In this document: positions 30,911 to 53,834 of the stretch, piece by piece | How the letters are laid out: every line of letters begins with the position of its first letter | How positions within the stretch are numbered: position 1 is the first letter of the stretch | From: Phaeosaccion multiseriatum | Lineage: Eukaryota > Protista > Ochrophyta, other classes | Direction: 5' to 3' | DNA: 64,000 nt | NCBI GenBank assembly: GCA_965112735.1 | Contig: OZ218952.1 | Location: 1,922,001 to 1,986,000 of the forward strand | Program-made: the position numbers and the translations under genes | The notes under the pieces: generated by a model | The model's input: the letters and a program-made list of their open reading frames with translations, nothing else | Database searches by the model: none | Told to the model about the DNA's origin: nothing

Positions 30911-32996
30911 TCAGGCCATTTCCGAAGCCACCTCGAGCATGGTCGCAGAGTCAACATCTCTCTCCTGCGGCGGGACCCCCCTCTGCTTGCCAAAGGTGGG
31001 GTCGGTAGCACGCATCAGATCCAGGGCAGTCTGCGATTCAAAGTGCTCCCTTGCTATGACGAGGACGCGTGTTTCCACACCAGGCAGACGGCGGCGTGCA
31101 CAGGCCAGGCTAATGTCCACCGAGGCTCCGGCTGAGAGCAGCTGCAGAGCGATGTCATGATGGTTAGAGAGGACGGCGTCGAGCAGCGGGGTCCTGCCGG
31201 CCCCGTCCAGGGCATCACATGGAGACCCTGCGTCGAGAAGACGGGCCACCACTGTCCCGTGCGCATGCATAGCGGCAAGATGAAGCGGAGTGAACCCATG
31301 GCACTGCCGACAATCCAGCTCCGCCCCAGCGCGGATAAGACGCCTTACCACTTGATCATGACCTTGTGCGGAGGCCGCATGAAGAGGCGTAAAACCTTGG
31401 TAGTTCGCCGCTTCCACTGCGGCACCAGCCGAGAGAAGCTTGTCCACTACCGCTGTACGGCCCTTGTGTGACGCCACAAAGAGAGGAGTGCGTGCTTCCT
31501 GATTCGCTCGATTGACGCAAGAGCCTGCTGAGATAAGTGTCTCCACCACTTGCAGTTTTCCCTCATGGGACGCGATGTACAGGGGAGTGGCTCCCCGCCT
31601 ATTCACTTGATCGACTCTCGCCCCTGCTGAGAGGAGCTCCTTGATAGCAGACTCGTGGCCATTTTGAGACGCCACGTAAAGGGGGGTGGCTCCATCGTCA
31701 CACGCTTTGTTGACACTCGCCCCTGCTGAGAGGAGCTGCTTTACGACAGACTGGTTGCCATTGCCAGCCGAAAAATAGAGCGGTGTCCATCCTTCCTCGT
31801 TCCCTCCGTCTACGTCTGCGCCTGCCGAAATGAGCCGCCGCACGACTTGATCGTATCCCTTTTCACTCGCGATGTGAAGAGGAGTTTCCCCGTGCTTAGC
31901 TTTCTGCTCAACAGGTGCGTTGGCCGACAGAAGCGCTTCTACTACCGATACATGCCCATTGTAGGCGGAAATGTAGAGCGAAGACATTCCCTCCAGCGCT
32001 TGGTCGATACAAGCTCCGGCAGAGAGGAGCTGCTGCACTACTGCCAGATGCCCCTGCTGAGCAGCCGCATAAAGTGCAAAGAATCCATCCTCAGCATCCA
32101 CCAAATCCACGCGGGCGTTGGCCGAAAGAAGTGCCTCCACGGCTCCAACGTGGCCACCATTACACGCCATAATGAGAGGAGTACATCCCTTCAGACTCCC
32201 GTTGTCAATGCTTGCACCCGCAGAGACGAGCCGCTGTAATGCTTGAGTGTGTCCTCTCTCAGCAGCAGCATAGAGCGGAGTAAATCCATCCTGATCCGCC
32301 TGGTTGACACTTGCGCCAGCTGAGATGAGCATGTCTAGGACCTCTACTCGACCCAGCTCAGCTGCCAATGTCATCGCGGTACATCCGGTCCTATTTATCG
32401 GCTGCTCCAGACCTGCTGTGCCCTTCATGGAGATGATTCTCCTCATTATCGCCTCGACTTCTGCTAAACTCCACCCCTCCCCTATGGCCAACGAGAGCGC
32501 GGTCGTCTGGAGAGCGGGGGTGGAGGAGGGGGAAAGACTTGTGAGCTTTCTCATCGGGCAAGGCTGGGGCACAGAGATTAATGAACGATCAAATGTAAAA
32601 CAAGAGCGCGCCAGCCACTGTGGCCCTGCCATTCCGGGGGATCCCAGGGGTGTCTTCACTGTCTTTCGGGAAGGCGGGCAGAGACGCACGAAACGAACAT
32701 CGCACCTCAACGTCGAATCCCTCTGCCATGGCGAACGAGAGCCCGAACGCCTGGAGAGCGCGGGGGGAGGAGGGGGAAAGATTTGTGAGCTTTCTCATCG
32801 GGCAAGGCTGGGCACAGAGACTATTGAACGATCAAATGTAAAACAAGAGCGCGCCAGCCAGTGTGGCAATCCTACAGTCCCCCCCCCCCCGTTCCTTTGG
32901 GGGGGGGACTGTAGGAATGTCTTCACTGTCTTTCGGGAAGGCGGGCAGAGACGCACGAAACGAACATCGCACCTCAAGGTCGAATCCCTCTGCCAT
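30911..32996 (-). CDS. Ankyrin-repeat protein (about 13 repeats); exons 32996-32973, 32750-32706, 32506-30911
   Basis: Serial G.TPL..A...G...VV..LL.AGA repeats in ORF 30911..32710. The two short 5' exons are inferred from GT donors and CTCAC/polypyrimidine/CAG acceptors. Confidence 0.93.
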
Positions 32997-32998
32997 AA
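32483..32998. repeat. Tandem duplication with a unit of about 245-270 bp, spanning an intron plus flanking exon pieces
   Basis: The blocks ctggagagcg..gagctttctcatcgggcaaggctg..gaacgatcaaatgtaaaacaagagcgcgccagcca..gtcttcactgtctttcgggaaggcgggcagagacgcacgaaacgaacatcgcacctcaa each occur twice. Confidence 0.95.
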
Positions 32999-33299
32999 TG
33001 AAAAGCTCCTCAGTCCACCAATCACCAATGTGGGGGGGGGGGTTAGTAACCCCTTGAAGTGCCATCTATGGTTCAGTTTAAGTCAATAAATCAATCCCCG
33101 GGCCCGGCCCGGCCCGCCCCCCTCTCCTACTCGCTCCTTCGTGCTAGCTTTGAGGGTGGTTACATGCGGCTGTGAAGACCCAACTCGATGGAGTCGTCTG
33201 TTGGAAGCGCTAGCGAGACGAAGGGCAGCCCTGCGTGACCACGCCGCCCAGGAGGGCAGCCGAAAGATGCAGCATTAGTGGAAGGGAACAGGGGGAGCG

Positions 33300-33757
33300 A
33301 TGAGTCACCCAACGCCCTCTCTTCCTTTCCTCAGCGCAGAGGAGGAGGTATGTCTCCAGCCTGGAGGCAGCGGCCGCATCGGAGGCCTGGCCAGCAGCCA
33401 AGACTTGTTCGATCTGCTCCTGGACGATGGGAGCCCGTTTTCACGTGCTTACCACGATTCGTTGGGCAATGGAGCTTGGCGAGAGCAGGCTTGGGAGGAG
33501 GACGAGAGGGCCATGCAATTCGACGGCAAGCTCAGGAAGGTGTCGTTTGTGTCTCCAGTGAGAAGCGGGCCACAGACCGGCAGCAAGGTACGCGATGAGG
33601 GCCGCTGAGTGAGTGCCGACGACGGTTGTCTTGTAGCCATCAACTTCCCTCCCTCTCCCTCTCTCTTTGCCCCCTCCTTCTACCCACATGCACCTTACTC
33701 TCACATGGCACTGCTTCCCCTCCTCCCCTTCATGCATGTCCTGTCTGTGTCTCTCCA

Positions 33758-33809
<52 letters not shown>

Positions 33810-36041
33810 AGGCTGGTGACGGAGGCTCAGCGCTTTTTGAGCCACACGCGCAGTACCGCCGTCCTGGAGGTGCGCAGGACGCTATCGGACCTGCCGTGCA
33901 GGTGCGTTTGAATGTGTGTCTGTGGGCCTCTGCCCCCTTGACTCGCCCTATTTCACACCTCCGCATGCTGCATCACCATCTCTCCTCCTTATCTTCTTAC
34001 TCACTCACACATATACATACACACACAGAGAGAGAGACGGGAAGAAGGCTCATGCTCGCTCTCTCTCTCTCTCTCTCCGCTCACCTCACCCTCTCTGTCT
34101 CTCTCTCCTCTCCCCCCCCCCCCCCCCCCTTTGTCCTTGTTCCTGTCAGTGATCTGTTCGTAGTGGTGGCTCGCACGTCCTTTGTCTTTGACGGCTTCGC
34201 AGCCTCTGCTCGGCTCTATTGCGGTGTGCTCTTCTCCGTTCCCACTGTGGACATTCCTTTCGCAGAAAGGTGTGTATGTGTGTGTGAGAGAGGGAGGCAG
34301 AGAGGGGCAGAGAGAGCGGAACAGAAGGGAAGCAACCGAGAGAGAGAGTAAGAGAGCGAGATAGAGCCAAGATAGAAGGAGAGAGAGGGAGTAAGACAGA
34401 GAGGGAGAGACAGAGAGCCAAGAGAGAAGGAGAGAGGAGGAACGGGCCCGGCGGTTCCGATGCCGAACTACGCGTATCTGTATGTAGCGGCAGTCAGCAG
34501 CTACCACTCAGGAGGAGGCTCTCACTCACGCCACTCCACTCTGAGTGCCACGGCCCAGTGAGCAACACGCTCCGATGCCCGGGGAGGTGGAAGCTCAAGT
34601 GTCAGTGCCAACACCAACGTCCCCTTCGTCCCTCTTGTCGACTCTCCTGCCTCCGTCAAACACCCACCAATCCTCTCCTCCTCCTCCTCCTCCTCCTCCT
34701 CCTCCTCCTCCTCCTCCTCTTCCTCCTCCTCCGCGTCAAACAATGGAATGTATTGCAATGTCGCAGCATCAAGGAGGGCGCAGCGCGGGCCTATCGCCTG
34801 AGCTTCGACAAATGGTGGCAGCTCGGTGACCGTTACATCAAGAAGAACGATAGTTCCTTGTTTGGCGGCATGGGGCTGGGCATGGGGATTGGAGGCATGG
34901 GGGGGCGGAAGAAGAAGACCGACAGCAGCAAGGGACAGGGCAAGGGCAAGGGTAAGGAAGGTGCCCAACAGACGAGCTTCCGAAGTACGGCCCGCCTTAG
35001 GAGACTCAAGAGAGGCGGCGGCGGCAAAGGAGGTGATGATGGGGCGGCTTCGAGCGCGCCCTGCCACCCCTTCTCTGAGCAGTACCTCCCCCTTCCCGAT
35101 GGCATTGAGCGGGTCTTGGAGGTGGGTGGAGGTGGGAGAGAGTGAGCAAAAATACAACAGAGTTCTTACCAGTGGTGGGGCTTTTGTATCGACGGATGAC
35201 AAGGCAAATATGAGGAGAGAGAGGGCAGGGTACGGGAGTGGGGGGTGAAGAAGGCTTTTGTGTTCTGTCGTGGGCTAGAGTGGTGTGGGAAGAGAAAAAG
35301 GAGAGGGACAGACAGACAGACAGACAGACTCGGACGTACTAACCAAGAAGCCTCTCTCTCTCTGAGGCTGCCTCTAAGAGTGCCTTCCAAGCCCCACGCT
35401 GACCCCACAAGCTAACGAGGCTGACCCTCTGACCCATGTAAACTTTGAACACTCAGGGAGAGGACCCTGGCGACTTTGTGCTGGTCGAGAAGGACCCCTC
35501 GTCTGCTTCCTCCCTCGCCCCGAGTCAAGCAGCGGCAGCGGCAGCGGCAGCGGCGGCAGCGGCAAACGCAAAGAGGAGGAGAGAGAGAGGAGAAGGAGCA
35601 GGGGCAGGTGTTGGGGGTGGGGGTGAGGGTGAGGGTGTGGAAGGCGACGCTGACACTGGAACGACGGAGGGGATGGTAGTGGACGGAAGGGCCTTGTTCA
35701 CAGCGGCGTCGCTAGCAGCAGCGGAGGAGCAGTACGTAGACTTCCCCACCGGGCTTCCCTCCGCGGTGTGGGCACGGGTGTTCAACGATAGAGTCGTCAA
35801 GATGTTACGTAAGAGCGAGAGGGGCCAAGATGGCACTGGACAGGGACCGGCGACACAGGCACTTGGCGTGGGGGGGGCTGCTGCTGATGGGGTCATGCTT
35901 CACAACAAGAGCAGCAGTGGCAGCGGCAGGAGCAGGAGCAGCAGCAGTGCCAGCGGCAGCAGGGTGGAGGCAGGGGCGGGGGGAGGGGTATGGGAAGGGC
36001 GGGATGGGCGGCAGCAGGAGCAGGAGCAGGTAGAGGAGGAG

Positions 36042-36076
<35 letters not shown>

Positions 36077-39000
36077 AGGGATTTGAGAGCATGGGAGACA
36101 GAGGGAGCAAGGATAATAGATCAGGCGTGGCTCTCCATTTCGGGCGGTCAAGGAGTGTCTCAAGAAGAAGAGGGGTACTGCTTTGGTATGGAGGACCCCT
36201 TTTGTCCTCCCCCCCTAGGGCTTGCTTTTGTGGTTGGTTGTTGAGGCGCGCTTTTGTGTGTGTGTCTGTGTGTGTGTGTGGATTTGTTTGTTGCTCTTTT
36301 GGCCTTCTGTTTGTTGCTTCACCGCTATACCGCACTTGCCCCACTGTTTCTCCCTCTGTCCCTCCCTTCCCTCCCTCCCTCCCTCCCTCCCTCCCTCCCT
36401 CCCTCTCTCTCTCCCTCTCCCTTCCCCCCCTCTTCTCCTCTCCCTCCCTCCCTCCCTCCCTTCGTCCCTTAGGACCCTGTCCAGAGGAAGTGGATCGAGC
36501 AGCTCAACGCTCTCGCTCTCAAGAGTAAGCAGGAGAAGGAGAGGGAGGAGGCAGAAGCGGAGGCGAGGAAGCGGAGAGCAGCCGAGGCAGCGGAGGAAGC
36601 AAAGGCCAAAGTGGAGGAGAAGCTGTGGATGGAGGAGAGGAAGGAGGAGGAGGAGGAGGAGGAGGAGGAGGAGGAGGAGGAGGAGGAGCAGGAGGAGGAG
36701 GAGGAGGAAGAGGAAAAGAAGGAGGGGAAGGACATGGAGTGTGTCGAGAGAGACACTGAGCTTACCGCTGTCGGGGGTTCTTCTGGAACTGGTGCTCCTG
36801 GTGCCTCTGGAGCTGGTGTTGAGGGTGCTGCTGATTCTGGTGGTCTGACTCCACCTCTCAGGACTGAGGGAGGAGGAGGAGGATCAGCCGCGGAAACTGT
36901 GCCTGAGCAAGGGCAAGGGCAACATCAAGAGGGCGTTGAGATGAAGGGAGGGCGAGAAAGAGGAGGAGGAGGAGGAGGAGGAGGAGGAGGAGGAGGAGGA
37001 GGAGGAGGAGGAGGAGGAGGAGAAGAAGGAGCGACATCCATTGCCATCCCGCCAGCCCCCTTGGAGACCAGCAAGCCTGCCGCGGCCGACGCTGCGTACT
37101 CCGTTACCTTCTACGGCAAGCGGCTCGGCCTGCAGCTTCGGTGTGTGTGTTGTGTGTGTGTGTTGTGTGCCTGTGAGTTCATCAATCTCTCTACTCTTTC
37201 TCTCAGCGTGTGGGTGTAAACATGCATGCGTATACATGTGTGTGTGAATCGAGGAGAGCGTAACTTTGTTTGCTCTGCTGCTCCTACCTCCATCCCACCT
37301 CACCCCACTCCACTTCACCCACCCACCCCACCGCACTTCATCCCACTTGGCTTGCTCAGGGAGCTACACGGCATCCCTGTAGTAGGGGGCTTGAACGGAT
37401 ACGACCCCAAGGGGATCCGAGACGGGCAGGAGGAGCAGGAGGATGGCAGTGGATGGGAGGCAGAGGAGGACACGTACGCAGGCGCGGAGCAAGGACAGGA
37501 CAGCGAAGAGGGGGCGGTGGTGGTAAGTCAGCAAAGAAGCGCATGTTTGGGGGAGGGGGGCAGAGAGACAGGGGGAGGGACAACAACGAAAAAAGAAGGC
37601 GCTGAGCGAAGTGAGTGAGTGAGTGACTGACTGACTGACTCGACTAACTCGCCTGACTCCCCGTGTATGCATGATGATCTACATCCTCTCTCCACAGGGC
37701 GGGGTAGGCGGCTGGGACGACCTTGACGGCCGATCCGGTGAGTGAGTGAGTGAGTGAGTGGGTGCGTGAGTGGGTGGGTGCGTGAGTGAGTGAGTGAGTG
37801 AGTGAGTGAGTGAGTGAGGGAGTGAGTGAGGGAGTGAGTGGGTGGGTGAGTGAGTGGGTGGGTGAGGGAGTGAGTGAGTGAGTGAGTGAGCGCGGCCTTA
37901 TGTAGGCCTGTGTGTGGGGGGGGGCAGTCATACCCACTCATACCCACTCGTACCCACTCGTACCTACTCCTGCCCACTCACATCCGTGCCCACCCCTCTC
38001 ACACAGACTCAGCAGCAATGGACGACTTGCACACCATGTTCGGAGGCCTGAGCAACAGCGACAACATGTCAAACATGCTGCTGCAGGACCTCGACCTTAC
38101 CGTCAAGTGCATCGTTCAGTGCCCTGCGGTAAGGGTAGGGGAGGGGAGAGGAGGGGGACCAGAGGGGAGGGAACGGAGGGGGACGATTTCGCGTCGTGTC
38201 TTGCTGGAGCAGTAGGGAGTCCCTTCCACGATGCTCCCTCTGTTCCGGCTCACTACTTCTTCTGTGGCCATTCCCACTCTCATCCTGTCTCCGTCTCTTC
38301 CCCTCTCACCTCCACCCGTCTCTCACTCTCTCTCCCTCTCTCTTCTCTCTCTCTCCCCCCCCCCCCCCTCTCTCTCTCTCCCTCTCTTTCTCTCTCCCCC
38401 TTTAGCTCTTCGGCCCCCGTGTGAAGAAGCTGTGGCGCTGGCGACCCCCCGGGGTGAGCTCCTCTCTGGAGCTGGCAGAGGACCCTGAGCACAGCTTGAT
38501 GCTCTTCGAGGCGGGTCTGAGGAAGAGATTGGGCATAGCTGCACCAGGTGATGATACAGTGACAGCAGCAGCAGTTGGTGATACTGCGGCGGCACCTGGT
38601 CGTGCCAGTGGTGATACAGCAGCAGCAGCAGCAGCAGCAGGAGAAGGAGGAGGAGGAGGAGGAGGAGGGGGAAAGAAGGAGGGGCCGTTGGTGATACAGC
38701 AGCAGCCGGCCCCGGCAACCTCCATAGCGGCTCCTCCCCTTGCTCTGCACGTCTCCTTCCGCGACGCAGAGACGGGCGAACTTGTGTCGCTGGACTGTGA
38801 GGCCTGGGGGGACTTCTGCGCCATGAAGGCCAAGACCATCACAGTGGAGCTGGGGAGGGAAGAGGAACAGGTTGGGGGTCAAGTTGGTGATACGGCAGCA
38901 GCAGTTGGTGGTGCAGCAGTAGTAGAAGGAGGAGCAGAAGGGACGGCGGCAGCGGCGACGGGTCAGCAAGGAACAGACGAGACAGAGGAAGCTGCATCTG

Positions 39001-41559
39001 ACGACCTTCAGCAACAAGGGGAAGAAAACGAAGAAGGAGGAGGAGAGGAAGGGGGAGGAGGAGGAGGAGGAGGAGGAGGAGGAGAGGAGGATACGCAGGC
39101 AGATGTCTCTCCTCTCTCTGCGCCTCTCCTCTTCGGAGAGAGCGATGGTAGTGCCCACGAGGTAGAGGAGGAGGCGGGAGAGAGATGGGTGGAGGGAGGG
39201 GTGGGAGAGAGAGAGGGGAAGGAGCGGTGTGATGACGACGATGCACACACGATTGGCGAAGAAGAGGGGGGCGATGACCAACAGCGCCAGCAGCACCAGC
39301 AGCAGCAAGAGGAAGAGGAGGAGGAGCAGGAGGGTAGAGAGGGGGCGGAGGCGGAGGCGGAGAAGGAGGCAACGAGCTCACCTACGACTAAGCATGTGCG
39401 GAAGGGCAGCGTTGATGGATCCGCCCCCCCCGCCCCCTTGCCGCCACTGCTGCCGACGCTGCCGCCGCTGCCTCTGTCCGTGGAGGGCTCGGCAGTGGAG
39501 GAGGAGCGCCGGCCCTGTATTGGGGCCGTGCTGCTGGCAGTCAACGGGGTGCGAACCCAGGTGAGGCACGGGGAGGGGGGACGTGGATGATTAAGGGATG
39601 AAAGGAAAGAAGGAAGGAAGATCGGGGAAGGAGGAGGAGGAGGGCGAGGAGGAGGAGGAGGACGAGAGGGAGGAGGAGGAGGAGGAGGAGGAGGAGGAGG
39701 ACGGATGGGTGTGTTTACCTATCGTCCTGCCTCTGGTCCACCCCTCGACTCTCTCTCTATCTTGCCCTCACTCCCCCCCCTCTCACCGCCGCATCCCCTC
39801 CTCTCTCTTCTCTCTTCCCTGCCCCTCCCTTCCCTCCCCTCTCCTCCCCCTCTCCCTTCCCCATTCTCTTCCCAACCTTCTTCACCCCCCTCTAACCAAC
39901 AACAGGGCCTGAGCTTTTCCAACGTAGTGTCTTTGCTCACCACCCAACAACGGCCGTTACGCCTTGAGTTTGCAGATAGCTGGGACACCATCTTCCACAG
40001 AGACCTCATCGAGGACCAGGCCAGGGACAAGATCTCCAGGAAGACGTTCGACTTGAAGATGGAGCATCCCCTCGCCGCCAAGATGAAGGCCAAGGTACGC
40101 CACGCCTTCGGGGGTGGATGGTGGATTCATTGTGGTGTGGATAGTGGGTTGACAAGTGACCGACCACGGCAGGTGGATGCACCCCCCAACACTTCAACGC
40201 CCCCCACACCCCCTCCCTCTCTACCCCCCCTCTCACCCTTTCCCTCCCTGTCTACGCTCCGTCTCAACATTTCCATCTCCCCTCTCCTTCCCTCCCTCCC
40301 CTTCCCCTCCCCCTCCCCCTCTCTCTCCTGCCCTCCCCTCTCCCCTCCCCTCTATCCCTCTCCTCCTCTCCCCTCTCCTCCTCCTCTCCTCTCCTCCCCT
40401 CCCCTCTCTCCATCCGCCTCTCTCTCCATATGTCTCCCCACCCCTCTCCTCCCTCCATACGCCTCTCCTCTGTTCTGCTCTTCTCGACTGTTGTAACTGT
40501 TGTAACTGTTGTAGATGGGTGAGTGGATGTCCTCCTTCCTCGAGCAAGACCTTCGTGAGCTCTCTACAGAGGCTGCGGCGGGTAGGGGGCAGACGCCGAG
40601 TGCCATGCTGTGGTCGCTCGTGGTGTGGATGGAACAGGTCAGTCTGTGCGCTGTGTATCTTCTCTCCCTCTTGTTTTGTCTCTGTCTCTCTGTCTCTCTG
40701 TCTCCCTGCCTCTCTCTCTATGTGTGAGGCTGTGTCTATGTCTGCTTCTGTCTCTGCCTCTTGCCTCTCTCTCTCTCTTTCTCTCTGTCTTTTGTCTCCC
40801 TCTCCGTGTTTTGTCTCTCTGTTTCTCTGTCTGCGTCTCCGTCTCTCTCTGTCTCTCTCTCTCTCTCTCTCCCCCTCTCCTTTCCATAAGCGCTGACCGA
40901 CCCACCCATCCAACCCACCCATCCACGCTTTGCTTTGTGCCTCTGCCCACTCTGCCCCCATTGACTTACTACCCACTGACTTCCTGCCCATTGACTTACT
41001 GCCCACCCACCCACCCCCACTCGTTAGGAGCTGGAGAAGATTGGCATCTTTAGCAATAACGCACAGGCAGGCGGCGGTCTTCCTATCATGGAGCGGAGGC
41101 AGTGGCAAGACGTGCACGCCCACCTCGAGCGTTTCGTGTTTGAGCAGACCTTCGAGCACTGCATCGCTTCCTCTGTGCCGGACTACGCCAACTGTGACTC
41201 CGTACTCAGTGACCGCTTGGCTTCGCTGCGCTTCTTGCAGCCGAGGCATTGGTGCGTGGGGCACATGTTACACCCCTCAGACGCCGAAGGTGAGGAGCAA
41301 GTGTATATATATATATAGAGAGGTAGGCGACCTACGTAAGACTACGTACTGGTCGGTGTATGTGTGTGTGTGTGTGGGGGGGGGGGGGGGCATATACTTA
41401 CCCCTTCAGATGCAGAAAATGAGGTGTGAAGTGTGAGTGGAGGGTGAGTGTGTGGGTGTGAGTTTCAGTCTCCCACTCTCACTGAGGCAGGTTCATACGG
41501 GCAGGCGGTCAGGCTGGAACAGGAAACTGAAACTGACTCCGCCTCGCCCCCCTCCCGCC

Positions 41560-41590
<31 letters not shown>

Positions 41591-42663
41591 CCTCTCTCCC
41601 TCTCTCCCTCTCTCTCCCTCTCTCCCTCTCTCTCAGGGCGTGAGTGGGAGCTGGCAGGACGCGAGCTGTACCGCTTGACGGAGTGCCGCTGCCCGCATGA
41701 CATGCTCAGCTGCGTCACGGCCTGCGTCAGACTCGTTGCGCTCTCAGTGGAGGCTGCCATGCTCCGCCAGCAGCAAGCAATAGCAGTTGGTGATACAGCA
41801 GCAGTTGGGGATACAGGAGGTGGCGATACAGGAGCTGGGGATGCAGGAGCTGGTGATGCAGCAGTGGGTGATACAGCAGGGGCAGGCGGAGGGGGAGGGG
41901 GGCAGGGGAGCAAGAAGGGAGGACACAAGAAGGCGGTCGCCATCGGAGCGGACGATCTGCTGGCAGCTCTGACGTGGGTGCTCGTTCAGGTGAGAGGGGA
42001 ATAGGGGAAGAGGAGAGGGGAGAGGTGGGGAAGGGGAGAGGGGAGAGGGGAGCAGTGGTGGAGGTCCATGTCCATGGGAGGGGAGAGGGGACAGGAGAAA
42101 GGAGAGGGTCATGCGGGGGCGGGAGGTGGCGACGGCTGATTGATGCCGCCCGCGGAACAAACAGCGCCCCTTTGGAATAGAGGAAGGGAATCGTTTGCTT
42201 TTCTCCCTCTTTGCTGGCCAATCATTCCGGTGGTCGGTTTTGATTGCCAAATGTGTCTGCCTGTCTGCCTGTCTGTCTGCCTGTCTGTCTGTGTGTGTGT
42301 GTGTGCCTGTGTGTGTGCTACTCCCTCACTCACTCACTCACTCACTGTGTGAGCGACTCCCATCCTCCCATCCTCCCATCCTCCCTCCCTCGTAGACCAA
42401 CCCTCCCCGTCTGGCGAGTCGTGTTTGGTTCGCAGCGAACTACATGCGCACCAACGGACGCGTCGGAGGATCAGGGGAGGGCGCGTACTGCCTCACTCAG
42501 GTAGAGGCATATGGAGCGGGAGGCTGGTCGGTTGGTTGGTTGGTTGGTCACAAAGGAGAAGATGGTAAAGGGTTTGTCTGCTTTGTCACGGTACGCCCCC
42601 GGTGTACAGACAGACCGACTATGCCATGCCCCACTACTCCTTCTGTATCACCAACTGCTACTG

Positions 42664-42697
<34 letters not shown>

Positions 42698-42990
42698 ATC
42701 CCCATCAACTGCTGCGCGTGTTTCTTTAGCTCTCTTCTGCCCTCGAGTACGCACGAACGGCCGACGCCTGTGTCCTAGCCGACATCTGTGAATCGGAGCT
42801 GGAGGAAGGCATCCGCCGCCACGGAGCCACACAGAGCCTCATCGCTGCGGCCCGAGACGGAAACGTGGAGGAGGTGCGGGCATGCCTAGGCCGAGGGGCA
42901 GACGTCAATGGTAAGTGGGATGGGGGAAGTTGGAGGGGATCGGCGGCGGGTGGGAGGGGACAAGCAAGATGACGCGCCCACCTGCCCGCC

Positions 42991-43022
<32 letters not shown>

Positions 43023-44835
43023 GGAGGGAGGGAGAGAGAGGGGCGGAGAGAGAGAGGGAGGGAGAGAGGTTTGCGAACCTCCCTCCCCCTCCCTTCTCCG
43101 GTTTGCATTGTTCGCCCACCCGCCTGAGTGTGTAATCCGTTACATTGCCCCCTCTTCCCCTTCTTCCTCTTGTCTCCCCTCCTCCTTCTTCCCTCCCTGC
43201 CTTCCTCCTCCTTCCCCCTCCCCTCTCCCCCCTCCTGCCCTGCCCTGCCCTGTCGATACACCTCTATCCCATCCCTGTCCTACCCATACACCTCTATCCT
43301 ACCTCTGTCCTACCGTGGCCTATCCAAATACCCACATACCCTGCCCCTGCCCTGCCCATACACCTGCACCTTGCTCTGCGCAGGTCTCTCAACGGATCAG
43401 CAGGACACGGCTCTCACCGCTGCCGTAAGGGGGGGGCAGCTGGGGGTGGTACGAGAGCTCCTCGGTGAGTGCTTAGCAAATACTACGGGGTAGTCAAAAA
43501 GAGAGAAGCGAGTACTTGGTGCGCAGTCAAAATGTAGAAGCGAGTACTTCGTGCGCAGTCACTAGAGCAGTGAGGAGTGAGTAGAAAGTCACTGAAGCAG
43601 TGAGTAGTGAGAAGATGGCATGGCTGCGGTAGAAATGTGTTCACGAGTCTCTCCTCCCTTCCCTCACTCACTCACTCACCCACTCACCCACCCACTCAAT
43701 TACTCACCCTCTCTCCAACTAATCTCTTCACACACTTGCGTGTGTATGTGTGTGCGTGCGTGCGCCGCCCACAGAGGGCCCTCCCATCCACACCAAAGGC
43801 ACTGGGAATGAAACTGTCACAGTCGCTCGGCCAAAGCTGTCTGTCCAAGTGTGCCCCACCTACGGAGAGCGGCGCAAGCTCACGGCACTCATGATCGCCG
43901 CCGCCACTCGGGAGCATACAGCAGTTGCTGATACAGCTGCGGCTGTTGGTGATGAGGAGGAGGATAAGAGGGACGAGGAGAAGGAGGACGGCAATATACC
44001 CAAGACCAAGAGCCTGGCGAGTATAGCGAGCATGGGTAGCATAGCCAGCATAGCCAGCACGGCGAGGCGGAAACCAGAGAGACTAGAGAGAGAGGGCTCA
44101 GGACTCGAGCTCCTGCTGCTGCTCCTCCGGCACGCATCCTCCTCGGACCGCGAGCAAACGTGCGCCGATGGCCTCAACGCCGTGGACTACGGCTATGGCT
44201 ATGGCTTTGGAAATGGCTCTGGGAATGGCTCTGGCTCAGTGGAGGTGGCGTCAGTGCTGCTTGCTGACCCTGCAAAAGTCAGCGTGTGCCAGGCTGTGCA
44301 GGTGAGGGGGGGGGAAGTATGGGTGGGTGAGTGAGTGGGTGAGTGAGTGGGGGAGTGAGTGGGGGAGTGCGGGCAAGGAGAGAGGAGGACGTGAAGTGAA
44401 GAGGGGTGGGAATAATGTTCTGTGGGCGGGTGTGTGTGTATGTGTGTGTATCTGTGTGCGTGTGCGTGGGGTGGCGCTCTGAAACCCGGTACATATTCTA
44501 CACGAGACCCCTTGTCTGCCAGTGATGTGGTGGGTAAAGACAACAGCTGCTGTACCACCAACGTTGCTGCTGTCTGTGTGCCACCCCCCTTTCTCCTCCC
44601 CCAGGCGGGTCATCTTGCCTACGTCAAGGCCCTGCTGCTCCAGGGGCAGGATCCAAATGCAGGCAAGTGGGAAAGCACCCCCACCGGAGATACCCTGATT
44701 CCAAAGAGACCAAAGCAGCTTCACCCAAACCCCCCCCGCTCCCTCCTACCACCTTCTCCTGCTGCCCCCCGTCGCTTACTGTCCCTCACCCCATGCCTTC
44801 TGAGTCTCTGCCCGCCCTCTTCACTCACACCCTTG

Positions 44836-44883
<48 letters not shown>

Positions 44884-47800
44884 CTCCTCGACCTCCGTCC
44901 TCCACTGCCATTGCTTGACGCTATTGCTTGACCCTGCCCCTTCTTCCTCTCCTTCAGTTGCTTGCTCATGCCTGATGCCTGCGCCGTCCTTTCTTTTTCC
45001 ATCGTCCTTGCCGAGGGCGCTGCAATCCACTCACTCGTGTAGCTTCACCTTCATGTTGCCCATGGGGGGCGCTGCGATCCACTCACTCGTGTGTGTCGCT
45101 TCACCTTCATGTTGCCCATCAAGTGTAACCTTGTTGCCCATCCGCCCCTCGTCCCGCCTTGCTTGAATGCTCTCCCTCTCTCTCTGTGTATGTGTGTGTG
45201 CGCGCATCCCCATCCCTCTCTTGCATCCATCCACTGCCATCTACTGCCATCCAACTCCCATCCACTGCCATCATTGCCATCCACCCCTTGTGACACCTCA
45301 CAGTCGACTCAACGGGGCAGTTCTCGCCTCTGATAGCGGCGTCCCTGCTCGGCCATCTGCCCATACTTGATGCGCTGTTGGAGGACTCCGCCACTGATGT
45401 CACGCGGTGAGGAGGAGAGAGAGGAGAGAGAGGGACACACAGAGAGGGAGAGAGAGGCACTAAGGGAGGGAGGGAGGGAGGGAGGGAGGGAGGGGGCAGC
45501 ACGGCACAAGAGAATAGTTTAGGCTCACTTGTCTTTTCTTATCCTCTTGCCCGTCCTCCTCTCTTGTCCTTTGTGCTCTTTTCTTCCTTTTTTATTTCAT
45601 CCCCCTTTCTTCTGCGCTCTCCAGGTGCAATGCCCGAGGAGAAACGGCTCTCATGTACTCTGTTCAGCGGGAGGGACACTGCTCCACCGCGGGGCAGGTG
45701 GGTGTGTGGTTGTGTGTAGACTGGGCACTCACTGACAGTTTCAGTTTCAGTTTCAGTTTATTTGCCCTCGGCGTCAAACTCACGTCCACTTACCTCAAAC
45801 TCTAACTCACTTCTCACTCACTTCTTACTCACTTTTTGGCACTTTTTACTCACTCACTGACTCACTCACTCACATACGTAGTCACACGCACCCTTATTCA
45901 CTCACTGACTCACTCACTCACTCACTCACTCACTTACTCACTCACTCACTCACTCACTCACTCACTCACTCACTCACTTACTTACTCACTCACTCACTCA
46001 CTCACTCACTCACTCACTCACTCACTCACTCACCCCCCGCCCCCATTGCCCGGCCTGGCCAGGTGGCAGTGGCGTCTCGACTTCTCCGAGCGGGCATTGA
46101 CCGCAGCGCCACGGACAGAGAGGGCAAGACGGCGCTGCAGTGGGCAGAGCGCTTCGGCAGTGCTCGACTCGTGGAGGTGATGAGGAACGATCCGAGACAA
46201 GTGGCCATCTTTGAGGCCTCCAGGTATAGGGTCTTGGGTATCGGGGTATTGGGCATTGGGAGAGAGGAGAAGAGAGGGAGGGAGGGAGGAGAGAGAGAGA
46301 GAGGAAGGAAGGGAGAGTATGAGGGTGCGGAGTGCTAAGGTTTCATTTCGGTGGTGGGTGGGTGGGTGGGTGGGGCTGCTGAGAGCGTTGCGTAGACAGA
46401 TGGATAACAAACGAGGGAATCATAAGAGTGCGTGAGAGAAAGAGGTAGAATGCTTCGTGATTGATACTTTCTCACTCACTCACTCACTGCCATACCCTCC
46501 CCTCTCCTCCCCTCCACGCGCCCACAGATCCCGTGATCTGCCCGCAGTGCGTGGTCTGCTTGATCAGGGCTGCGACCCCAATGAAGCGTGTCCAGAGAGA
46601 AACTACACGCCGCTCATTGCAGCCATCTTTAATCAAGACGAGGTGAGGGAGGGAGGAGGAAGGAGGGAGCGAGGGAGTGGGTGAGTGGGTGAGTGGGTGA
46701 GTGTGTAACCAAGCCTCTGCTGCTGCTGCTGCTGCTGCTGCTGTTGTATCACCAACTCTCGTATGTCATGTGTGACAGGACATGACACGCGCGCTGCTGA
46801 CACACCCGGACACGGATGCGGACAAACCGGGCCTTCACGGCATGACTCCTCTTATGTATGCCGCCCAGGTGAGAGTAAGGCAGTGAAAGTAAGGCAGTGA
46901 ACGTAAGAAGCAGCGAGAGAGAGGGCCGGTGAGTAGTTGTAGCAAGTACGGCAACGAAAGAGAAACAGTTGAGACGCGCCGTCCCGGTCACCCACGCACT
47001 CCCACCGTCCCTCCCTCCCTCACTCTCTGTCTGTCATTGTGGCAGGCCGGGCACTTTCGCATGGCCCAACTGCTCCTCCTCCACGAGCGCTCTAACCGCT
47101 ATCTGCGCAACAACAAGGGGGAGAGAGCTCTGGACATCGCAGCGGAGAGGGGCTTCCGGTGAGTTGAGTGAGTGAGTGAGTGAGTGAGTGAGTGGCGGGG
47201 TTGGGTGCGGGAGGGATGGGGTAGGGTGGGTGTGATGGGGGAGGGGAAGGGGGGGGGACGGGCAGGGCGTCCTCAATGGCACTTGATGGTGCCGCCGCTA
47301 CTGTATCACCAACTCCTGCTGCTGCTGCTACTGCTGCTGCTGTTGTATCACCAACTGCCAGGGATGTGGTGAACCTGCTCTCCTTCGATCCCGCCCGTCA
47401 GAGCGTGTGCCTCCTTGCCGTGAGGGGAGACTGCCCCGCGGTCCTTAGTCTTGTGGCGCAGGTGCGAGTGCAAGCGGCACAGAGAGAGAGAGATTAGACT
47501 GTATAGTGTGTGTGGTATTGCCCATGAGAGGCTTGCCATGCTTCTCTTTGTGGTGCCCACGCAGCGCTCTCTCTGTCTCTCCGTCAAACTCCTTACACTC
47601 GTTTCCTGCTTGTTCAATAGTGGTGCCCTGTGCCAATTGGTTTGTTGTGTTGAACATGTGCACGCACACACACACACACACGCACCCCCTCCCCCCCCTC
47701 CCCCCTTCCCAACCCCAGGGCGTCCCCCTGAACTCTCGGCACCGCATCAGGACGGCAAGGGGGTGGCAGCAAGACATGTACTCACCGCTCATCGCCGCCG

Positions 47801-49028
47801 CTGCGGAGGTGAGTCATGCAGACAGGCAGGCGCATGGGCAGAGTACGGCAGGCAGTAAGACAGGCATATGGGCAGGATCGTTGGGTAGGGCGAGAGCTTG
47901 CTCAGGGGTCGTGTGTGCCGTACGTCTAAACTGACGTCCAAACTGTCTCGCACTCTCTCACGCACCCCTCCTCCTCTTGCTGTCCCTTTGCTGCTCTGTG
48001 CTCACTCGGAACAGGGGCATGTGGGTGTGATTCGGGGACTGATCCGCTACTCTGCTCAGCACTTCAAAGCACACCCCCCCAAGCGGCAGCACCTTCAGCG
48101 ACAGCACCTCCAGCGGCAGGAGCAGCAGCAGCAGCAGACGGAACGTCGCCAGCAAGGAGCGCCTGCAGCTGCCGCTATGCCTGCCCCTGCCCAGGTGGAC
48201 GGTTCTGCCCTGCTGCGAGAGCTCCAGAGGCTGCAGCTTGATCTGCGCAACGTGCTCGGACAGACGGCTCTCATGTGCGTAGGGCGGAGACCAGAGGCCG
48301 GAGCTCTCTCTCTCTCTCTCTCTCAGTCTCTCTCTGTCTCTCTCTCTCTCGCGCGAGCCCCCCCTCTCTGTCTCTCTCTCTACACCTGCACGCACCTGTG
48401 TTACTGTGTCACCATCTGCTGTGTGACCAATGCTGTATCACCAACTGCTGTATCGCCAAGTGCTGTATGACCAATGCTTCATTGCCATCTGTGGATCACC
48501 ACCACCTGCTGAATCACCAACAGGTATGCCGGGGCCCGCGGCCACGAGGAGGCGGTTCTGGCGCTGCTGGCGGCGGGGGCAAGCAGAGACGTCATGGACT
48601 TGGCGGGAAGGACGGGTGAGGGAGGGAATGAGTGAGCAAGTGGGGGACTGAGGAAGGCAAGGAGGGAGGGAGGGCGGGAGAGTGAGTGAGGGAGTGAGGG
48701 AGGGAGGGAGTGGTGAGTGAGCAAGTGACTGAGTGAGTTTTACGTATCGTGTGGTAAACAGCGTTCTGGCCCGGTAGTCATTCATCGTGCCGCCTCTGTC
48801 CCCCTCCCCCCCCCAAACACACGCACACATACCCTCTCCTTGTTAGCCCTGTGGTTCGCCCAAAGCTCGAAGAGTAAGACCCTCATACCCATTCTGCGCA
48901 TGGACCCAAAGAAGAAGAACATTGCAGAGGTGAGGAGAGGACGGAAGTGACTTAGCAGTGACTGGCAGCTGAGGACACCCTCACCCTCACCCTCACCCTC
49001 ACCCCCACCCCCACCCTCACCCTCACCC

Positions 49029-49066
<38 letters not shown>

Positions 49067-49068
49067 TT

Positions 49069-49132
<64 letters not shown>

Positions 49133-49134
49133 TT

Positions 49135-49179
<45 letters not shown>

Positions 49180-50140
49180 GCTCATCCCCTGTTGTGTATG
49201 CTGTGGCTCTCAGACGGCGGCATCAGGGGCGGTGGATGAGACGTGGGCTCTGCTGAAGCAAGGTGAGTGAGTGAGCACCATGAAGCAGGGGCGTGAGCCG
49301 ACAGGGGGTAGGTGGGTTACCGAGAAGGGGTGGATGGGTGGGTGGGTGGATGGATGGGCCGGGCATTTCGAGGCCTCGACAAGGCAGCAGAGAACGCAGC
49401 ACACCACACCATCCACAATATCATATCATTGCCCAAATCATTTGCCACAATATCATATCATTGCCCAAATCATTTGCCACAATATCATATCATTGCCCAA
49501 ATCATTTGCCACAATATCATATCATTGCCCACAATATCATATCATTGCCCAAATCATTTGCCCAACGCCCCTGGCCCCTTGCTTCTTGCGCGGCCTTTGG
49601 CATCACACCTCTTCCTCTCTGTCCGCCCCTGACACACAGCAACACAACAGCACAGCACTCGCAGAGCCTTCTTTCTAACACACGTGTTTTCGCCTCCTTT
49701 TACTTAGTTACTTGTCTTGAGTAGTTGTGTGTGAGTATTCTGCGCGGCGTCCCGTCCACTGCCTTCCTCCCTCCTGTTGGATGTGCTGCTGCATGCACCA
49801 CCCCCACCCGCCCACTGCCTTGACCCCTGCCCCACCCCCTCCCCCCTGCCTTCTCCCCTCTTCCATGTGGTACCGTATCACCGCCTATCACCCTCTCAGG
49901 AGTGGAGCTCAACGGCCTGTGGCTCTTCGACGTTGAGCAGCAACGGCAGCAGCAACAGCAGCAGCAGCAGCGACTGTCTCAGTCAAAGACGGGCAAGATG
50001 GATGCGAGCCTTGGATCCGCTGCGAGTGCCCGGCTGTATGCAGAGCGGTGCGTGCCGTGCGTGCGTGCGTGCGTGGGTGGGTGGTTGTGAGGGCTGGTGG
50101 GCAGTGGCGGTTTTTGTGATGGAGATGATGATGATGAGGG

Positions 50141-50176
<36 letters not shown>

Positions 50177-50197
50177 GGGTGGTGGCACATGCGTAGT

Positions 50198-50231
<34 letters not shown>

Positions 50232-50780
50232 CTCACGCTTTTAGCTACTTACGCCGCCCCTGTTGCCCTTCCTCCTTCTGCTCTCCTCTCCCTCCCTCCT
50301 CCCTCCCCTCCCTCCCTCCCTCCCCCTCTCCCTTTCCTCCCCCCCGCCTCCCCCCCCCCCCCTGGGTCACTGACTTCCGACCCCCTGTACGCAGGTACGG
50401 CGGTGCAGCGAGGGGGCAGGAGGAGCACGCCTACCCCGGGGGGGGCAAGGTCACGGCACTTGGAGCGGCGGCAATCTTCGGTCAGACCAAGGTATGGATG
50501 GTCAGGCAGGCAGTGGGGCAGTGGGGCAGTGGAGAGGGTAGGACGGTGCTCTCTGAAAACAGCAAGAAAAGTGCACAAGCTAGGCTCAGCTTCAAGTGGT
50601 TGGGGGTTTTGAGTACTATGTGGACAGGGTGTTTTGGCTTTGCCACGCTTCCTTCTCTGCTTCTTTCCAAGAATCAGTTCACAACCTGTAGAGTAAATGG
50701 AGCAAATAGGCAGATGTAGAGTGAATAGATGGATTTAGGGCCTTGATGAGCAGCAGCAGTAGAGGGTATTGGGTGGAGGC

Positions 50781-50821
<41 letters not shown>

Positions 50822-53055
50822 TGGGCTTAGGGTTTGGGTTAGGGGGTGTCGAACACGCGGCAGGACGACCATCGTACCGTCTCTGTCTGCTCTGTGGCGT
50901 GTGTTCCATGGGTGTTGCATGCGTCACTCAGCTCCTGCTGCTCATGTCTCTACCTGTTTGTATATGCGTTCGTCCTCACACTCACCCTTGGCACTCACAC
51001 ACACCCTCTCTCACACACACTCACACACACACACTCACACACACGCACACACACACACACAGGTGGTGGCGTACCTGCTGCAGCTTCCCGGGCTTGCCCT
51101 TGACCAAGCGGACTCCGGGGGGTGGACAGCGCTCATGCACGCCGCGTGCTGCGGTCACGAGGAGGTGCTGCTGCGCCTCCTCAAGGCAGGTGCCGACAGG
51201 TGTGTGTGTGTTGTGTGTTGTGTGGTGTGTGTGTGTGTGTGTGCATTGTGTGTGTATGTGGTGTGTTTCTTGTGCTTTTGTATTGTATGGGCTCGGTTTT
51301 CGGCGTGTAGACCCCAACAAAGGGCTGGCCGGACAGCTGCGGCCCGCGAATAGGTTTATGCGCCAAAGCTTACCAGGCCTTGCCTCAGTCTGAAGGAGCA
51401 CCCCCACAGCGGCTGACAACTGGAAGAGAAGAAGCTCTCAAGCTCAATACTCACACTCAAAGCTCATGCTTCACTCCCACCCACCCACCCACCTACCCTG
51501 CGCACGCACGCACACGCATCCTCAAAACGACTGCTCAGATACAAGAAGGCGCCTGGGCGACGAGGGAGCGGAGCCGTGAGTCTCGCCATCAGCAGCGGAC
51601 ATGTTGGCCTCGCCGCCGTCATCAATGCCGACCCCCTGAGGGTGGGGCTGCTGGAGCTCTGCAGGGAGGGCAAGGCGTTGCTCGCGGAGGGCCTTCTCAA
51701 GCAAGGTGGGTAACGCTAACGCTAACGCTGGGTGCGGTTGGTGCGGTTGGTACGGTTGGTACGGTGGGTACGGTGGGTACGGGGGAGGAGTGTGGATGGA
51801 AGGGGTAGAGAGAAGGAGCACAGCCCGTACGGTCAGTCAGTCAGTCGGCCTCCTCCTCCTCGTTCTTCGTCCGTCGTAAGTGCCCTCAGGACTCGGCCCC
51901 TCTCGCGTTGACTCTCTTGCACTGCCCTCTTTCCTCTGGTGCTTGCTCGCTTGCATTCTGTCCTCTGCTGCTCACTGCCCATGTCACCGCCCCTTCCCTT
52001 CCCGGTCAGGCGTGTCTCCGAACACACTGGACCACCGCGATGGATACAGCCACGGAACGCCGCTTATTGCCGCCGCAGGTGAGAGAGAGGCAGAGAGAAA
52101 GAGGGAGAGAGGGAGACACAAGAGAGAGAGAGACAAGAGAGCCAGATGGAGATGAAAGAAAGAGGGGACAAGAGAGACTGAGAAGAGAGAAAGTGAGGGG
52201 TGAGAGGGTGAGAGAGAGAGAAGGCAGGGGAGTCATTCATGCATTTCGAGCTTGGCAATCTTCAGACTCGACCACTGTGCCCCTCCCCGCCACAAACCCA
52301 CGCACACACGCACACACATAAGCTAATGTCTTCCGCCCTTCCTATCTCTTTCCTCTCTCTCTCTCTGTCTGTCTCTTATCGCCCACGGCTGTGCTGGGCT
52401 GCCGTGCTTGCCGCCTCTTACACGTCGCGCCTTCGCAGCCAACGGCCACAGATCGGTGGTCAAGCTGCTGCTGAGGCAACCGGGCATCGAGGTCAACAAG
52501 CCCAACCCTGGGGGGAGGACAGGTAGGCAAAGAGGACAGGGACAGGGACAGGGACAGCGAAGGACGTACGTCACCTCTCTGATGTGCGCTGCACTGCACC
52601 AAGATGGACGGGGCGGTAGGCACAGCAGTTGGTGATACAGCGGGGAGACAGATGGGGATGGCGCTGGCACATGTGCTCACTAGGAGCCCGAGTCGAAGCT
52701 GCTGAAAGCCTCTCTCTGACTCCCCCCTGACCCCCTATACTCGCATTGCGCCTCCCACATGTGCACCCGTCCTCCCTCTCTCTCTCCCTCTCTCTCTCTG
52801 TGTGCCTCCTCACCCACCCTCCATACGGCCATGCCCTCCCTCACTCCCTCCCCTCCCTCCCCACCCCCCAAAAGCCCTCATGGTAGCGTGTCACGGCGGG
52901 GCCCTGGGGGTGGTGCGGGACCTCCTGTTGGCAGGTGCCAAGAAGGGCCTGAAGGACGCCAAGGGCTGCTCAGCCGAGCATCATGCCTACCTCGGGGGAG
53001 GGCACGGGAGGATGGTTCTCGTCAAGGGGCTCTTCGCCGTCATGGGGGGGGGCGG

Positions 53056-53091
<36 letters not shown>

Positions 53092-53113
53092 GACCAAGGG
53101 ACGAAAAGTTTGA
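33300..53113 (+). CDS. Large VASt (StARkin) + split PDZ-like + VPS9 (Rab5-family GEF) + ankyrin-repeat protein (VARP/ANKRD27-like with N-terminal extension)
   Basis: Exons splice in phase from 33300-33587 through 42730-42910 and into the ankyrin exons; not every later junction was checked. VASt-like: LFDLLLDDGSPF..RKVSFVSPV..VTEAQRF..DLPCSDLFVVVAR..SIKEGAARAYRLSFDKW. VPS9: IGADDLLAALTWVLVQTNPPRL..GEGAYCLTQLSSALEY. Many ankyrin repeats follow to the stop at 53113. The start codon is uncertain. Confidence 0.86.
48976..49178. repeat. (CACCCT)n tract (TGAGGG on the minus strand), telomere-variant-like, intronic
   Basis: About 33 near-perfect hexamers. Confidence 0.95.
49414..49563. repeat. AT-rich 32-bp minisatellite CACAATATCATATCATTGCCCAAATCATTTGC, about 4.6 copies
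   Basis: Three full units, one 20-bp truncated unit and one further full unit. Confidence 0.95.
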
Positions 53114-53725: not shown

Positions 53726-53803
53726 TTAATGACTGTCCTCATGCACCTGTCCGAGCTCCGCCTTGAGTCTGTTGGGAGCGAGGGAGGGAGGCAGGGCCAG
53801 AGA

Positions 53804-53834
<31 letters not shown>

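Follow-up and report, generated by a model that had tools for sequence, protein, structure and literature searches.

The window analysed here, 64,000 nucleotides (nt) of the ochrophyte Phaeosaccion multiseriatum (GenBank assembly GCA_965112735.1, contig OZ218952.1, positions 1,922,001 to 1,986,000), contains on its forward strand, at 33300-53113, what I hold with high confidence, from sequence comparison, to be one gene. Its predicted product carries, from the N-terminus onwards, a short conserved peptide, a VASt domain, a charged helix, a PDZ-like domain into which a PB1-like part is inserted, a helical bundle with a VPS9 domain, and about 20 ankyrin repeats. Taken together, the observations are likely to be best explained by a single gene for a cytosolic protein of 2,578 amino acids (aa) with these domains, which belongs to a family of ochrophyte algae. 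A preliminary description of the region, made from the letters alone, had proposed that the VASt, VPS9 and ankyrin parts are spliced together in one gene with the start and stop given here, and this is borne out by 38 in-frame exons that run to the stop codon at 53111-53113 and by colinear orthologues. The layout itself is not new: it is shared by models from Cladosiphon and Nemacystus, and an Ectocarpus orthologue was already listed in 2018.

One gene or several

The DNA of the window is that of an intron-rich eukaryote, with a GC content of about 58%, and between 33.3 and 53.1 kb many stop-free stretches of the forward strand translate to recognisable protein. I traced the first introns by eye and then chained exons by dynamic programming, trained on conserved peptides and later on the model's own splice sites; five places were corrected by hand against orthologues. 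The resulting model has 38 exons with consistent phases and no in-frame stop, and its coding sequence of 7,737 nt comprises 2,578 codons. The exon boundaries are predictions from the sequence and from the comparison with orthologues. In-frame introns might be concealed by low-complexity stretches in exons 5, 6, 10, 14 and 18, and the very small exon at 37698-37737 is an uncertain point of the model.

The one-gene reading rests on orthologues. A HMMER search with exon 1 gave seven matches, six of them short exon-like open reading frames (ORFs), which served as leads to loci and not to architectures; those from other genomes share the conserved start MS-G-PT-x-x-LP-F/Y-L/F-S/T-A. In four NCBI assemblies of one intron-poor relative (loci L002-L005), the plus strand carries in order VASt-N, VASt-C, the linker blocks, PDZ-like-N with PB1, PDZ-like-C and a VPS9-ankyrin ORF of 1,181 codons, with no intervening gene and with minus-strand genes on either side, and the first four exons of L002 splice in phase and are stop-free. 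Word searches from an ORF of the L002 type led to full-length models in EukProt, namely g15609.t1 of Cladosiphon okamuranus (P0025, 2,339 aa) and g7524.t1 of Nemacystus decipiens (2,332 aa). The precomputed domain lists of these two models hold Pfam VASt, VPS9 and Ank, all three, which P0025 and the protein P0026 carry, and in Chrysophaeum (KAJ8600375) the N-terminal region and VPS9-Ank stand in one model. Among long proteins, a word search with the VASt region of P0025 found P0025 and P0026 only, so that the count of species bearing the fusion rests on loci and on Herman et al. 2018. Judged by sequence, the window gene belongs as an orthologue to a family of ochrophyte algae, among the other members of which are Ectocarpus Esi0135_0039, Cladosiphon g15609 and Nemacystus g7524. 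From end to end, the model is colinear with P0025 (aa 1-530, E 3e-59, the same value as for the window N-terminus against P0025 1-510; aa 572-810, E 3.5e-24; aa 1009-2280, 46% identity).

Unspliced at 35122, the reading frame stops 21 nt further on, and this is one ground for reading the region as two or more transcription units, a VASt-only gene (exons 1-4, about 290 aa, stop at 35143-35145) followed by a PDZ-PB1-VPS9-ankyrin gene, with the fusion as an artefact of prediction. However, the conserved coding blocks 3' of the junction between exons 4 and 5 have no start codon of their own. Exon 4 joins the C-terminal helix of the VASt domain to a block CHPF...IERVLE. In exon 5, which opens with GEDPGDFVLVEKD, the first Met comes 68 codons further on, none being in frame before the conserved block, while exon 6 opens with DPVQRKWIEQL and reaches its first Met 52 codons later. 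In Cladosiphon the blocks CHPFSEQYLPLPDGIERVLE and GEDPGDFVLVEKD are adjacent, and a single uninterrupted exon of L002 (11041-11192) holds the counterparts of the CHPF...IERVLE block, of the start of exon 5 and of the later GLP...W block. As this exon spans both sides, the junction is bridged without relying on any single predicted intron.

Several observations weigh against a single gene. Public annotations split or truncate it in Scytosiphon, Chrysoparadoxa, Discosporangium and Ectocarpus sp. 4, and other Phaeoexplorer models begin mid-gene. In Scytosiphon promiscuus (GCA_964200315.2, L012:4112-12616), 8.5 kb lie between a 223-aa VASt model and a 1,306-aa VPS9-Ank model. An orthologue without VASt also exists: on a Logan contig of a compact genome (SRR24204719, GC 40%, L011:1400-6802), an intronless gene for 1,800 aa begins at the PDZ-like part, no VASt was found anywhere on the contig, and minus-strand neighbours lie 320 nt upstream. 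The C-terminal part can thus work alone, the fusion is not universal in the family, and an older PDZ-PB1-VPS9-ankyrin protein either gained the head or lost it. Finally, the four public runs that hold the locus, all from one sample, contain about 90% of its genomic words, introns included, and are DNA; placed on 34700-40699, they prove to be unitigs of DNA that cross the introns, with joints only at CAG-type repeats, and carry no splice information, so that transcript evidence for the locus was found in none of the four.

However, nine colinear exons lie in the Scytosiphon gap, with 60-100% aa identity to residues 241-843 of Cladosiphon, and the VASt model of Scytosiphon is marked as partial; the model of Ectocarpus sp. 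4 is cut by the end of its contig. In Chrysoparadoxa australica (GCA_964200425.2, L010:4522-10001), which, like Scytosiphon, has the same exon order on one strand with no other gene in between, the VASt exons lie unannotated 5' of a 1,338-aa model, and the conserved start codon is preceded by a stop. Since the annotations of these two species leave conserved exons out and break the gene up into a VASt fragment, a VPS9-ankyrin model and small pieces, their protein sets under-report the fusion. It is present in the annotations made independently for Cladosiphon, Nemacystus, Chrysophaeum and Ectocarpus siliculosus. Two or more transcription units seem highly improbable to me on this evidence, although an additional VASt-less isoform may arise from an internal promoter. 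I also considered a separate VPS9 gene starting from an internal Met at 40515, and rejected it, as the orthologues read straight through this point (...AKLRKQIEEWMTAF...). Minus-strand ORFs delimit the locus at 32710 and 53726.

Domains of the predicted protein

Within the window, family tests were made on single exons, and tests of fold and family on whole domains were made on orthologues; Atlas searches with single exons return fragments of similar length and are uninformative on architecture. Exon 1 matches Pfam VASt (PF16016) with 18.4 bits (E 0.0028, profile 9-65 of 152). This is below the gathering score of 27 bits, because the domain is cut into four exons, of which exons 2-4 are too short to score singly. 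In the Atlas feature search the clusters nearest to exon 1 are VASt (0.95). The Cladosiphon orthologue P0025 passes the Pfam cutoff of 27 with 34.3 bits (E 3.6e-8, residues 32-169, profile 10-150 of 152), and VASt is found in 23 of the 30 best Atlas clusters (0.94) for its residues 1-200. From the Pfam pass of the orthologue and the Atlas matches, taken alongside a poor fold model, I assign the N-terminal domain to the VASt family with considerable confidence, as had been done in the preliminary description, where it was placed at 33300-34850; the domain extends to 34845.

The low score of exon 1 does count against this assignment, and so do two other results. Residues 1-205 of Cladosiphon, folded on eight alignment rows, gave a poor model (pLDDT 45) with structure matches that were non-significant, and sequence searches with exon 1 or with the family profile found no solved VASt structure. 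The 18.4 bits, the low-confidence model with its non-significant matches and the N-terminus of Chrysophaeum, which has no Pfam VASt match, would suit a region that is not a functional lipid-binding VASt but its degenerate remnant, or else an unrelated alpha/beta domain with a weak chance score. I regard this as improbable, given the match of P0025 over nearly the whole profile.

Behind the VASt domain and its linker, the charged segment, which was read from the sequence as a putative coiled coil or single helix, opens with a conserved KWIEQL, the counterpart of which in Cladosiphon is KWLEQL. The PDZ-like part that had been described next to it keeps its conserved pattern, but consists of two half-domains, the half-motifs YSVTFYGKRLGLQLRELHGIPVVGGL and RRPCIGAVLLAVNGVRTQGLSF...RLEF lying about 460 residues apart with the PB1-like insert between them. 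In L002 the N-terminal half is uninterrupted (ORF 11663-12988). Pfam PDZ had no match in the window exons, P0025, P0014 or P0016, nor did any other tool confirm PDZ, and the N-terminal half has low confidence in the model; the name PDZ-like is taken from the sequence pattern. For the conserved module of about 120 residues between the halves, the AlphaFold model of the L002 counterpart (11-row alignment) is confident (pLDDT 66-91), and PB1-like is my guess from the sequence.

The VPS9 domain with its ADD loop and GE..Y.LT helix had been recognised before, and motifs and Pfam agree with it, but its extent, given as 39980-42760, is corrected to 40065-42500. Exon 14 matches Pfam VPS9 with 28.6 bits (profile 1-61), above the gathering score of 27 bits, and exon 15 continues this match directly with 13.9 bits (profile 61-94). 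Compared with solved structures, the VPS9 segment of an orthologue matches Arabidopsis VPS9a (2efc, E 3e-15) and Rabex-5 (E 6e-8), and through this orthologue GADDLL and GEGAYCLTQ of the window align with GADEFLP and GEAAYFFT of VPS9a. The window exons of the VPS9 region are 48-67% identical to P0025, which itself scores 65.3 bits for VPS9. The long ankyrin array that follows was also seen earlier; a self-trained profile recognises about 20 repeats in it. Over about 1,300 aa, the VPS9-ankyrin side is 45-46% identical to Discosporangium and Cladosiphon.

Neither a transmembrane segment, the lack of which had been stated from the letters, nor a GRAM domain was detected. The highest 19-residue Kyte-Doolittle mean of the window protein is 1.68, in a charge-bearing helix of VPS9, and the maxima of the orthologues (1.5-1.9) always fall in VPS9 or ankyrin helices. 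GRAM had no Pfam match in P0025 or the window exons, and the VASt domain begins about 30 residues past the conserved start codon. The protein had been called soluble. The lack of a transmembrane segment agrees with this, but a conserved peptide at residues 9-15, resembling the FFAT motifs that bind VAP proteins of the endoplasmic reticulum (ER), might attach it to the ER.

The pattern MS-x-PT-x-x-LP-[FY]-[FL]-[ST]-[AC]-x-[ED]-E is kept in the window, Cladosiphon, Nemacystus, Scytosiphon, Chrysoparadoxa, L002 and three metagenome ORFs; a metagenome scan with the N-terminal alignment found nothing by tblastn. Chrysophaeum is the one lineage without Ser or Thr at core position 4, where it has Glu; with this swap included, the motif is conserved in nine sequences. 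The FFAT core is E-F-F-D-A-x-E plus an acidic flank, and in Phospho-FFAT motifs position 4 is Ser or Thr (PMC7705450). The core P-F/Y-L/F-S/T-A/C-x-E/D of the present family matches FFAT positions 2-7, while position 1 is non-acidic. Two points speak against an FFAT function: the usual upstream acidic tract is missing, and chance matches are common, as 10% of human proteins are Phospho-FFAT candidates by score (PMC7705450). Another short sequence, 'GDFVLVE', was considered as an LC3-interacting motif and dropped, as its aromatic residue is not conserved.

Exons, repeats and neighbours of the locus

The coordinates of the gene and its surroundings are collected in Table 1. All 37 introns end in AG, and 36 begin with GT. 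I chose the exceptional GC donor at 44663 because no other splice keeps the blocks ...QGQDPNA and DSTGQFSPLIAAS in frame. Introns have a median length of 304 nt; GC is 0.63 in exons (0.69 at third codon positions, GC3) against 0.57 in introns. The introns are full of microsatellites (for instance 33760-33808, 34060-34130 and 36340-36470), with (CT)n and (CCCT)n runs before acceptors and a GTGA/GTGG run of about 150 bp immediately past the donor at 37738 (37738-37890), and these runs offer many cryptic splice sites.

A dispersed 13-mer, CAGTTGGTGATAC, is present with at most one mismatch in 14 copies in the window, where 0.02 would be expected; of these copies, 13 lie inside this gene. Seven copies, in exons 10, 14 and 18, encode peptides of the VGDT type, including a low-complexity loop of about 55 residues in VPS9 that has no counterpart in orthologues. 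Upstream, about 590 bp from the start of the VASt-VPS9 gene, the neighbouring ORF of 599 codons, which is oriented divergently to the gene, encodes very regular, consensus-like ankyrin repeats. Just 5' of the start codon, in intergenic or promoter sequence at 32500-33090 (plus strand), lie two tandem units of about 240 bp, of which one frame reads ...NERSNVKQERAS.CG...VFTVFREGGQRRTKRTSHL.VESLCH.

Table 1. Positions in the window of the predicted gene, its exons and domains, and neighbouring features
Feature	Position	Strand	Remarks
Coding region	33300..53113	+	ATG at 33300; stop 53111-53113
Exons 1-10	33300-33587, 33810-33901, 34150-34269, 34767-35121, 35457-36041, 36473-37140, 37360-37522, 37698-37737, 38007-38128, 38406-39560	+	
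Exons 11-20	39906-40094, 40515-40637, 41028-41289, 41637-41989, 42396-42500, 42730-42910, 43384-43464, 43775-44301, 44605-44662, 45304-45406	+	
Exons 21-30	45625-45697, 46063-46223, 46528-46642, 46779-46868, 47046-47158, 47362-47461, 47719-47808, 48015-48274, 48524-48615, 48847-48929	+	
Exons 31-38	49214-49262, 49900-50047, 50395-50491, 51063-51199, 51539-51705, 52010-52078, 52439-52522, 52875-53113	+	
FFAT-like peptide PFLSAEE	33324..33344	+	aa 9-15; Ser at core position 4
VASt (StARkin-type lipid-binding) domain	33396..34845	+	aa ~33-193, exons 1-4
Junction of exons 4 and 5 (35121 to 35457)	35068..35495	+	flanked by conserved blocks CHPFSEQYLPLPDGIERVLE and GEDPGDFVLVEKD
Conserved block YVDFPTGLPSAVWARVFNDRVVKML	35733..35807	+	aa 378-402; aligned with Cladosiphon, Nemacystus and L002
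Charged E/K/R-rich helical segment (putative coiled coil or single helix)	36473..36643	+	aa 481-537; read from sequence
PDZ-like N-terminal half, YSVTFYGKRLGLQL and RELHGIPVVGGL	37091..37402	+	aa 687-717, exons 6-7; conserved in all orthologues
PB1-like beta-grasp domain with low-complexity loop (guess from sequence)	38087..38855	+	aa ~798-961; inserted in PDZ-like domain
PDZ-like C-terminal half, RRPCIGAVLLAVNGVRTQ and GLSFSNVVSLL...RLEF	39507..39977	+	aa 1179-1220, exons 10-11; conserved in every orthologue
Helical bundle and VPS9 guanine nucleotide exchange factor (GEF) domain	40065..42500	+	aa ~1250-1540, exons 11-15
GADDLL (Asp finger)	41945-41962	+	
GEGAYCLTQ helix	42474-42500	+	
Ankyrin array	42835..53017	+	aa 1572-2547, exons 16-38; weak Pfam Ank matches on single exons
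GC-AG intron	44663..45303	+	donor GCAAGT; sole non-GT donor among 37 introns
13-mer CAGTTGGTGATAC, copies in gene	38572, 38685, 38881, 41784, 41802, 41862, 42645, 43922, 46746, 47303, 47345, 48435, 52626 (range 38572-52638)		
Upstream neighbour, uninterrupted 599-codon ankyrin-repeat ORF	30911..32710	-	5' limit of locus
Downstream neighbour ORFs	53726..54667	-	3' limit of locus

Known proteins and possible function

A survey of 2018 gives the domains of the Ectocarpus orthologue Esi0135_0039 ('EsVarp') as 'DUF47, Vps9, Ank, Ank', assigns the protein to the Rabex+GAPVD1 clade and calls its VPS9-ankyrin layout convergent with that of Varp (Herman et al. 2018, Traffic, PMC6032885). The entry 'DUF47' was very probably cut short from 'DUF4782', as the VASt region of GRAMD1B was formerly called in Pfam; a Pfam scan did not find a PhoU-like DUF47 in P0025. 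Neither VPS9 nor ankyrin stands among the partners of VASt in the original survey of this domain (Khafif et al. 2014, PMC4082322). Literature searches for VASt, StARkin or DUF4782 together with VPS9, or for the Ectocarpus locus tag, brought up no text that discusses the fusion, nor did the searched literature contain an experimental study of the Ectocarpus, Cladosiphon or Nemacystus proteins. The architecture is thus already on record, uninterpreted, and is not a new kind of protein. Esi0135_0039, g15609.t1 and g7524.t1 share with the window protein the domain order, the N-terminal peptide and colinearity from end to end, and are of similar length (2,332-2,349 aa, as compared with 2,578). Low-complexity inserts are longer in the window protein, and several of them are built of the dispersed 13-mer. 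Its identity with these orthologues reaches about 46% over the VPS9-ankyrin part, but only about 30% over the N-terminal third.

The kinship with VARP (ANKRD27) that had been implied for the window protein is not supported. Both have VPS9 followed by ankyrin repeats in one cytosolic protein, a likeness of layout only, and the window protein, too, probably acts on GTPases of the Rab5/21 type at endosomes. However, the Zn-fingernail CHPLCxCxxC with which VARP binds VPS29 is absent from the window model, P0025 and P0014 by pattern search, and VARP is without VASt, PB1 and PDZ-like parts and has far fewer ankyrin repeats; the Ectocarpus orthologue groups with Rabex+GAPVD1 and not with Varp (PMC6032885). 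With LAM/Ysp and GRAMD1 (Aster) proteins the window protein shares a VASt of the same Pfam family. In contrast to the window protein, LAM and GRAMD1 proteins carry a GRAM/PH domain before VASt and a C-terminal transmembrane anchor in the ER, and the VASt of the window protein forms the extreme N-terminus, behind the FFAT-like peptide. The best matches among solved structures, Rabex-5 and Arabidopsis VPS9a, have the same tandem of helical bundle and VPS9 with a GAD-D/E Asp finger, but are small, with ubiquitin-binding or no extra domains, whereas the window VPS9 has the loop of about 55 low-complexity residues. Lipid-transfer tethers with FFAT motifs (OSBP/ORP1, STARD3) may follow a similar logic, that of a lipid-transfer domain, a VAP-binding peptide and a second, organelle-binding part, the likeness being one of motif only; STARD3 uses a Phospho-FFAT with Ser at position 4 (PMC7705450). 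Unlike these tethers, the window protein has no acidic tract upstream of its motif, and its endosome-binding part would itself be the Rab activator.

VPS9 domains whose Asp finger is intact catalyse nucleotide exchange on GTPases of the Rab5/21/22 type, ankyrin arrays and PB1 and PDZ-like modules bind partners or oligomerise, and the VASt domains of Lam and GRAMD1/Aster proteins bind and transfer sterol. By analogy, the VPS9 part of the window protein would be the activator, on endosomes, of a Rab5/21/22-type GTPase, docking to partners or to the protein itself would fall to the ankyrin, PB1 and PDZ-like parts, and the VASt head would bind sterol or another membrane lipid. A coupling of sterol sensing or transfer to Rab activation, as proposed in the preliminary description, is a plausible hypothesis. 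The mechanism that I prefer, though only tentatively, is that of a tether-type lipid-transfer protein at contacts between ER and endosomes. The C-terminal half would sit on a Rab-positive endosome, and the N-terminal FFAT-like F-L-S-A-E-E would hold VAP on the ER, probably once phosphorylated. The VASt domain, on a leash of about 300 residues (a long flexible linker with two conserved blocks), could then move lipid between ER and endosome, so that Rab activation and lipid flux would occur at the same place.

Alternatively, the protein may be a lipid-gated exchange factor, the VASt domain of which reads endosomal sterol or lipid or folds back on VPS9 and thereby sets the place and time of GEF activity, with no transport; in that case the conserved N-terminal peptide would contribute to the structure of the domain and would not be a VAP ligand. 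The VASt-less orthologue on the Logan contig fits such a regulatory add-on, the FFAT-like motif has no acidic tract and is of a kind frequent by chance, and the second membrane anchor is putative. However, it is established that the characterised VASt domains, those of Lam and GRAMD1/Aster proteins, are transfer domains, and the N-terminal peptide is better conserved than most of the domain, with Ser/Thr or Glu at position 4, as expected of a VAP ligand. I consider lipid gating without transport rather unlikely. More speculative, and unlikely as it stands, is an extension of the tether mechanism, in which one polypeptide forms a self-contained, ochrophyte-specific machine for ER-endosome contacts, with a phospho-switched FFAT-like end, a sterol-shuttling VASt domain, and Rab5-type recognition and activation. 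If it were true, a single molecule would determine both lipid flux and organelle identity.

Fusions that are kept in distant species often reveal proteins that cooperate elsewhere as separate polypeptides. Under the same speculative extension, the gain of VASt by an older PDZ-PB1-VPS9-ankyrin protein would be such a 'Rosetta stone' fusion, pointing to a general link between Lam/Aster sterol transport and Rab5 activation. The family has been recorded once, in a supplementary table and under an uninformative domain name, and as several brown-algal annotations are fragmented, a curated full-length model with a domain map should be useful, the more so as Ectocarpus is now genetically tractable. 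For animals and yeast, a link between sterol handling and early-endosome identity is, to my knowledge, still to be worked out; that a lipid domain of the Lam/Aster type and an activator of the Rab5 family stand in one conserved fusion suggests that the two processes are coupled.

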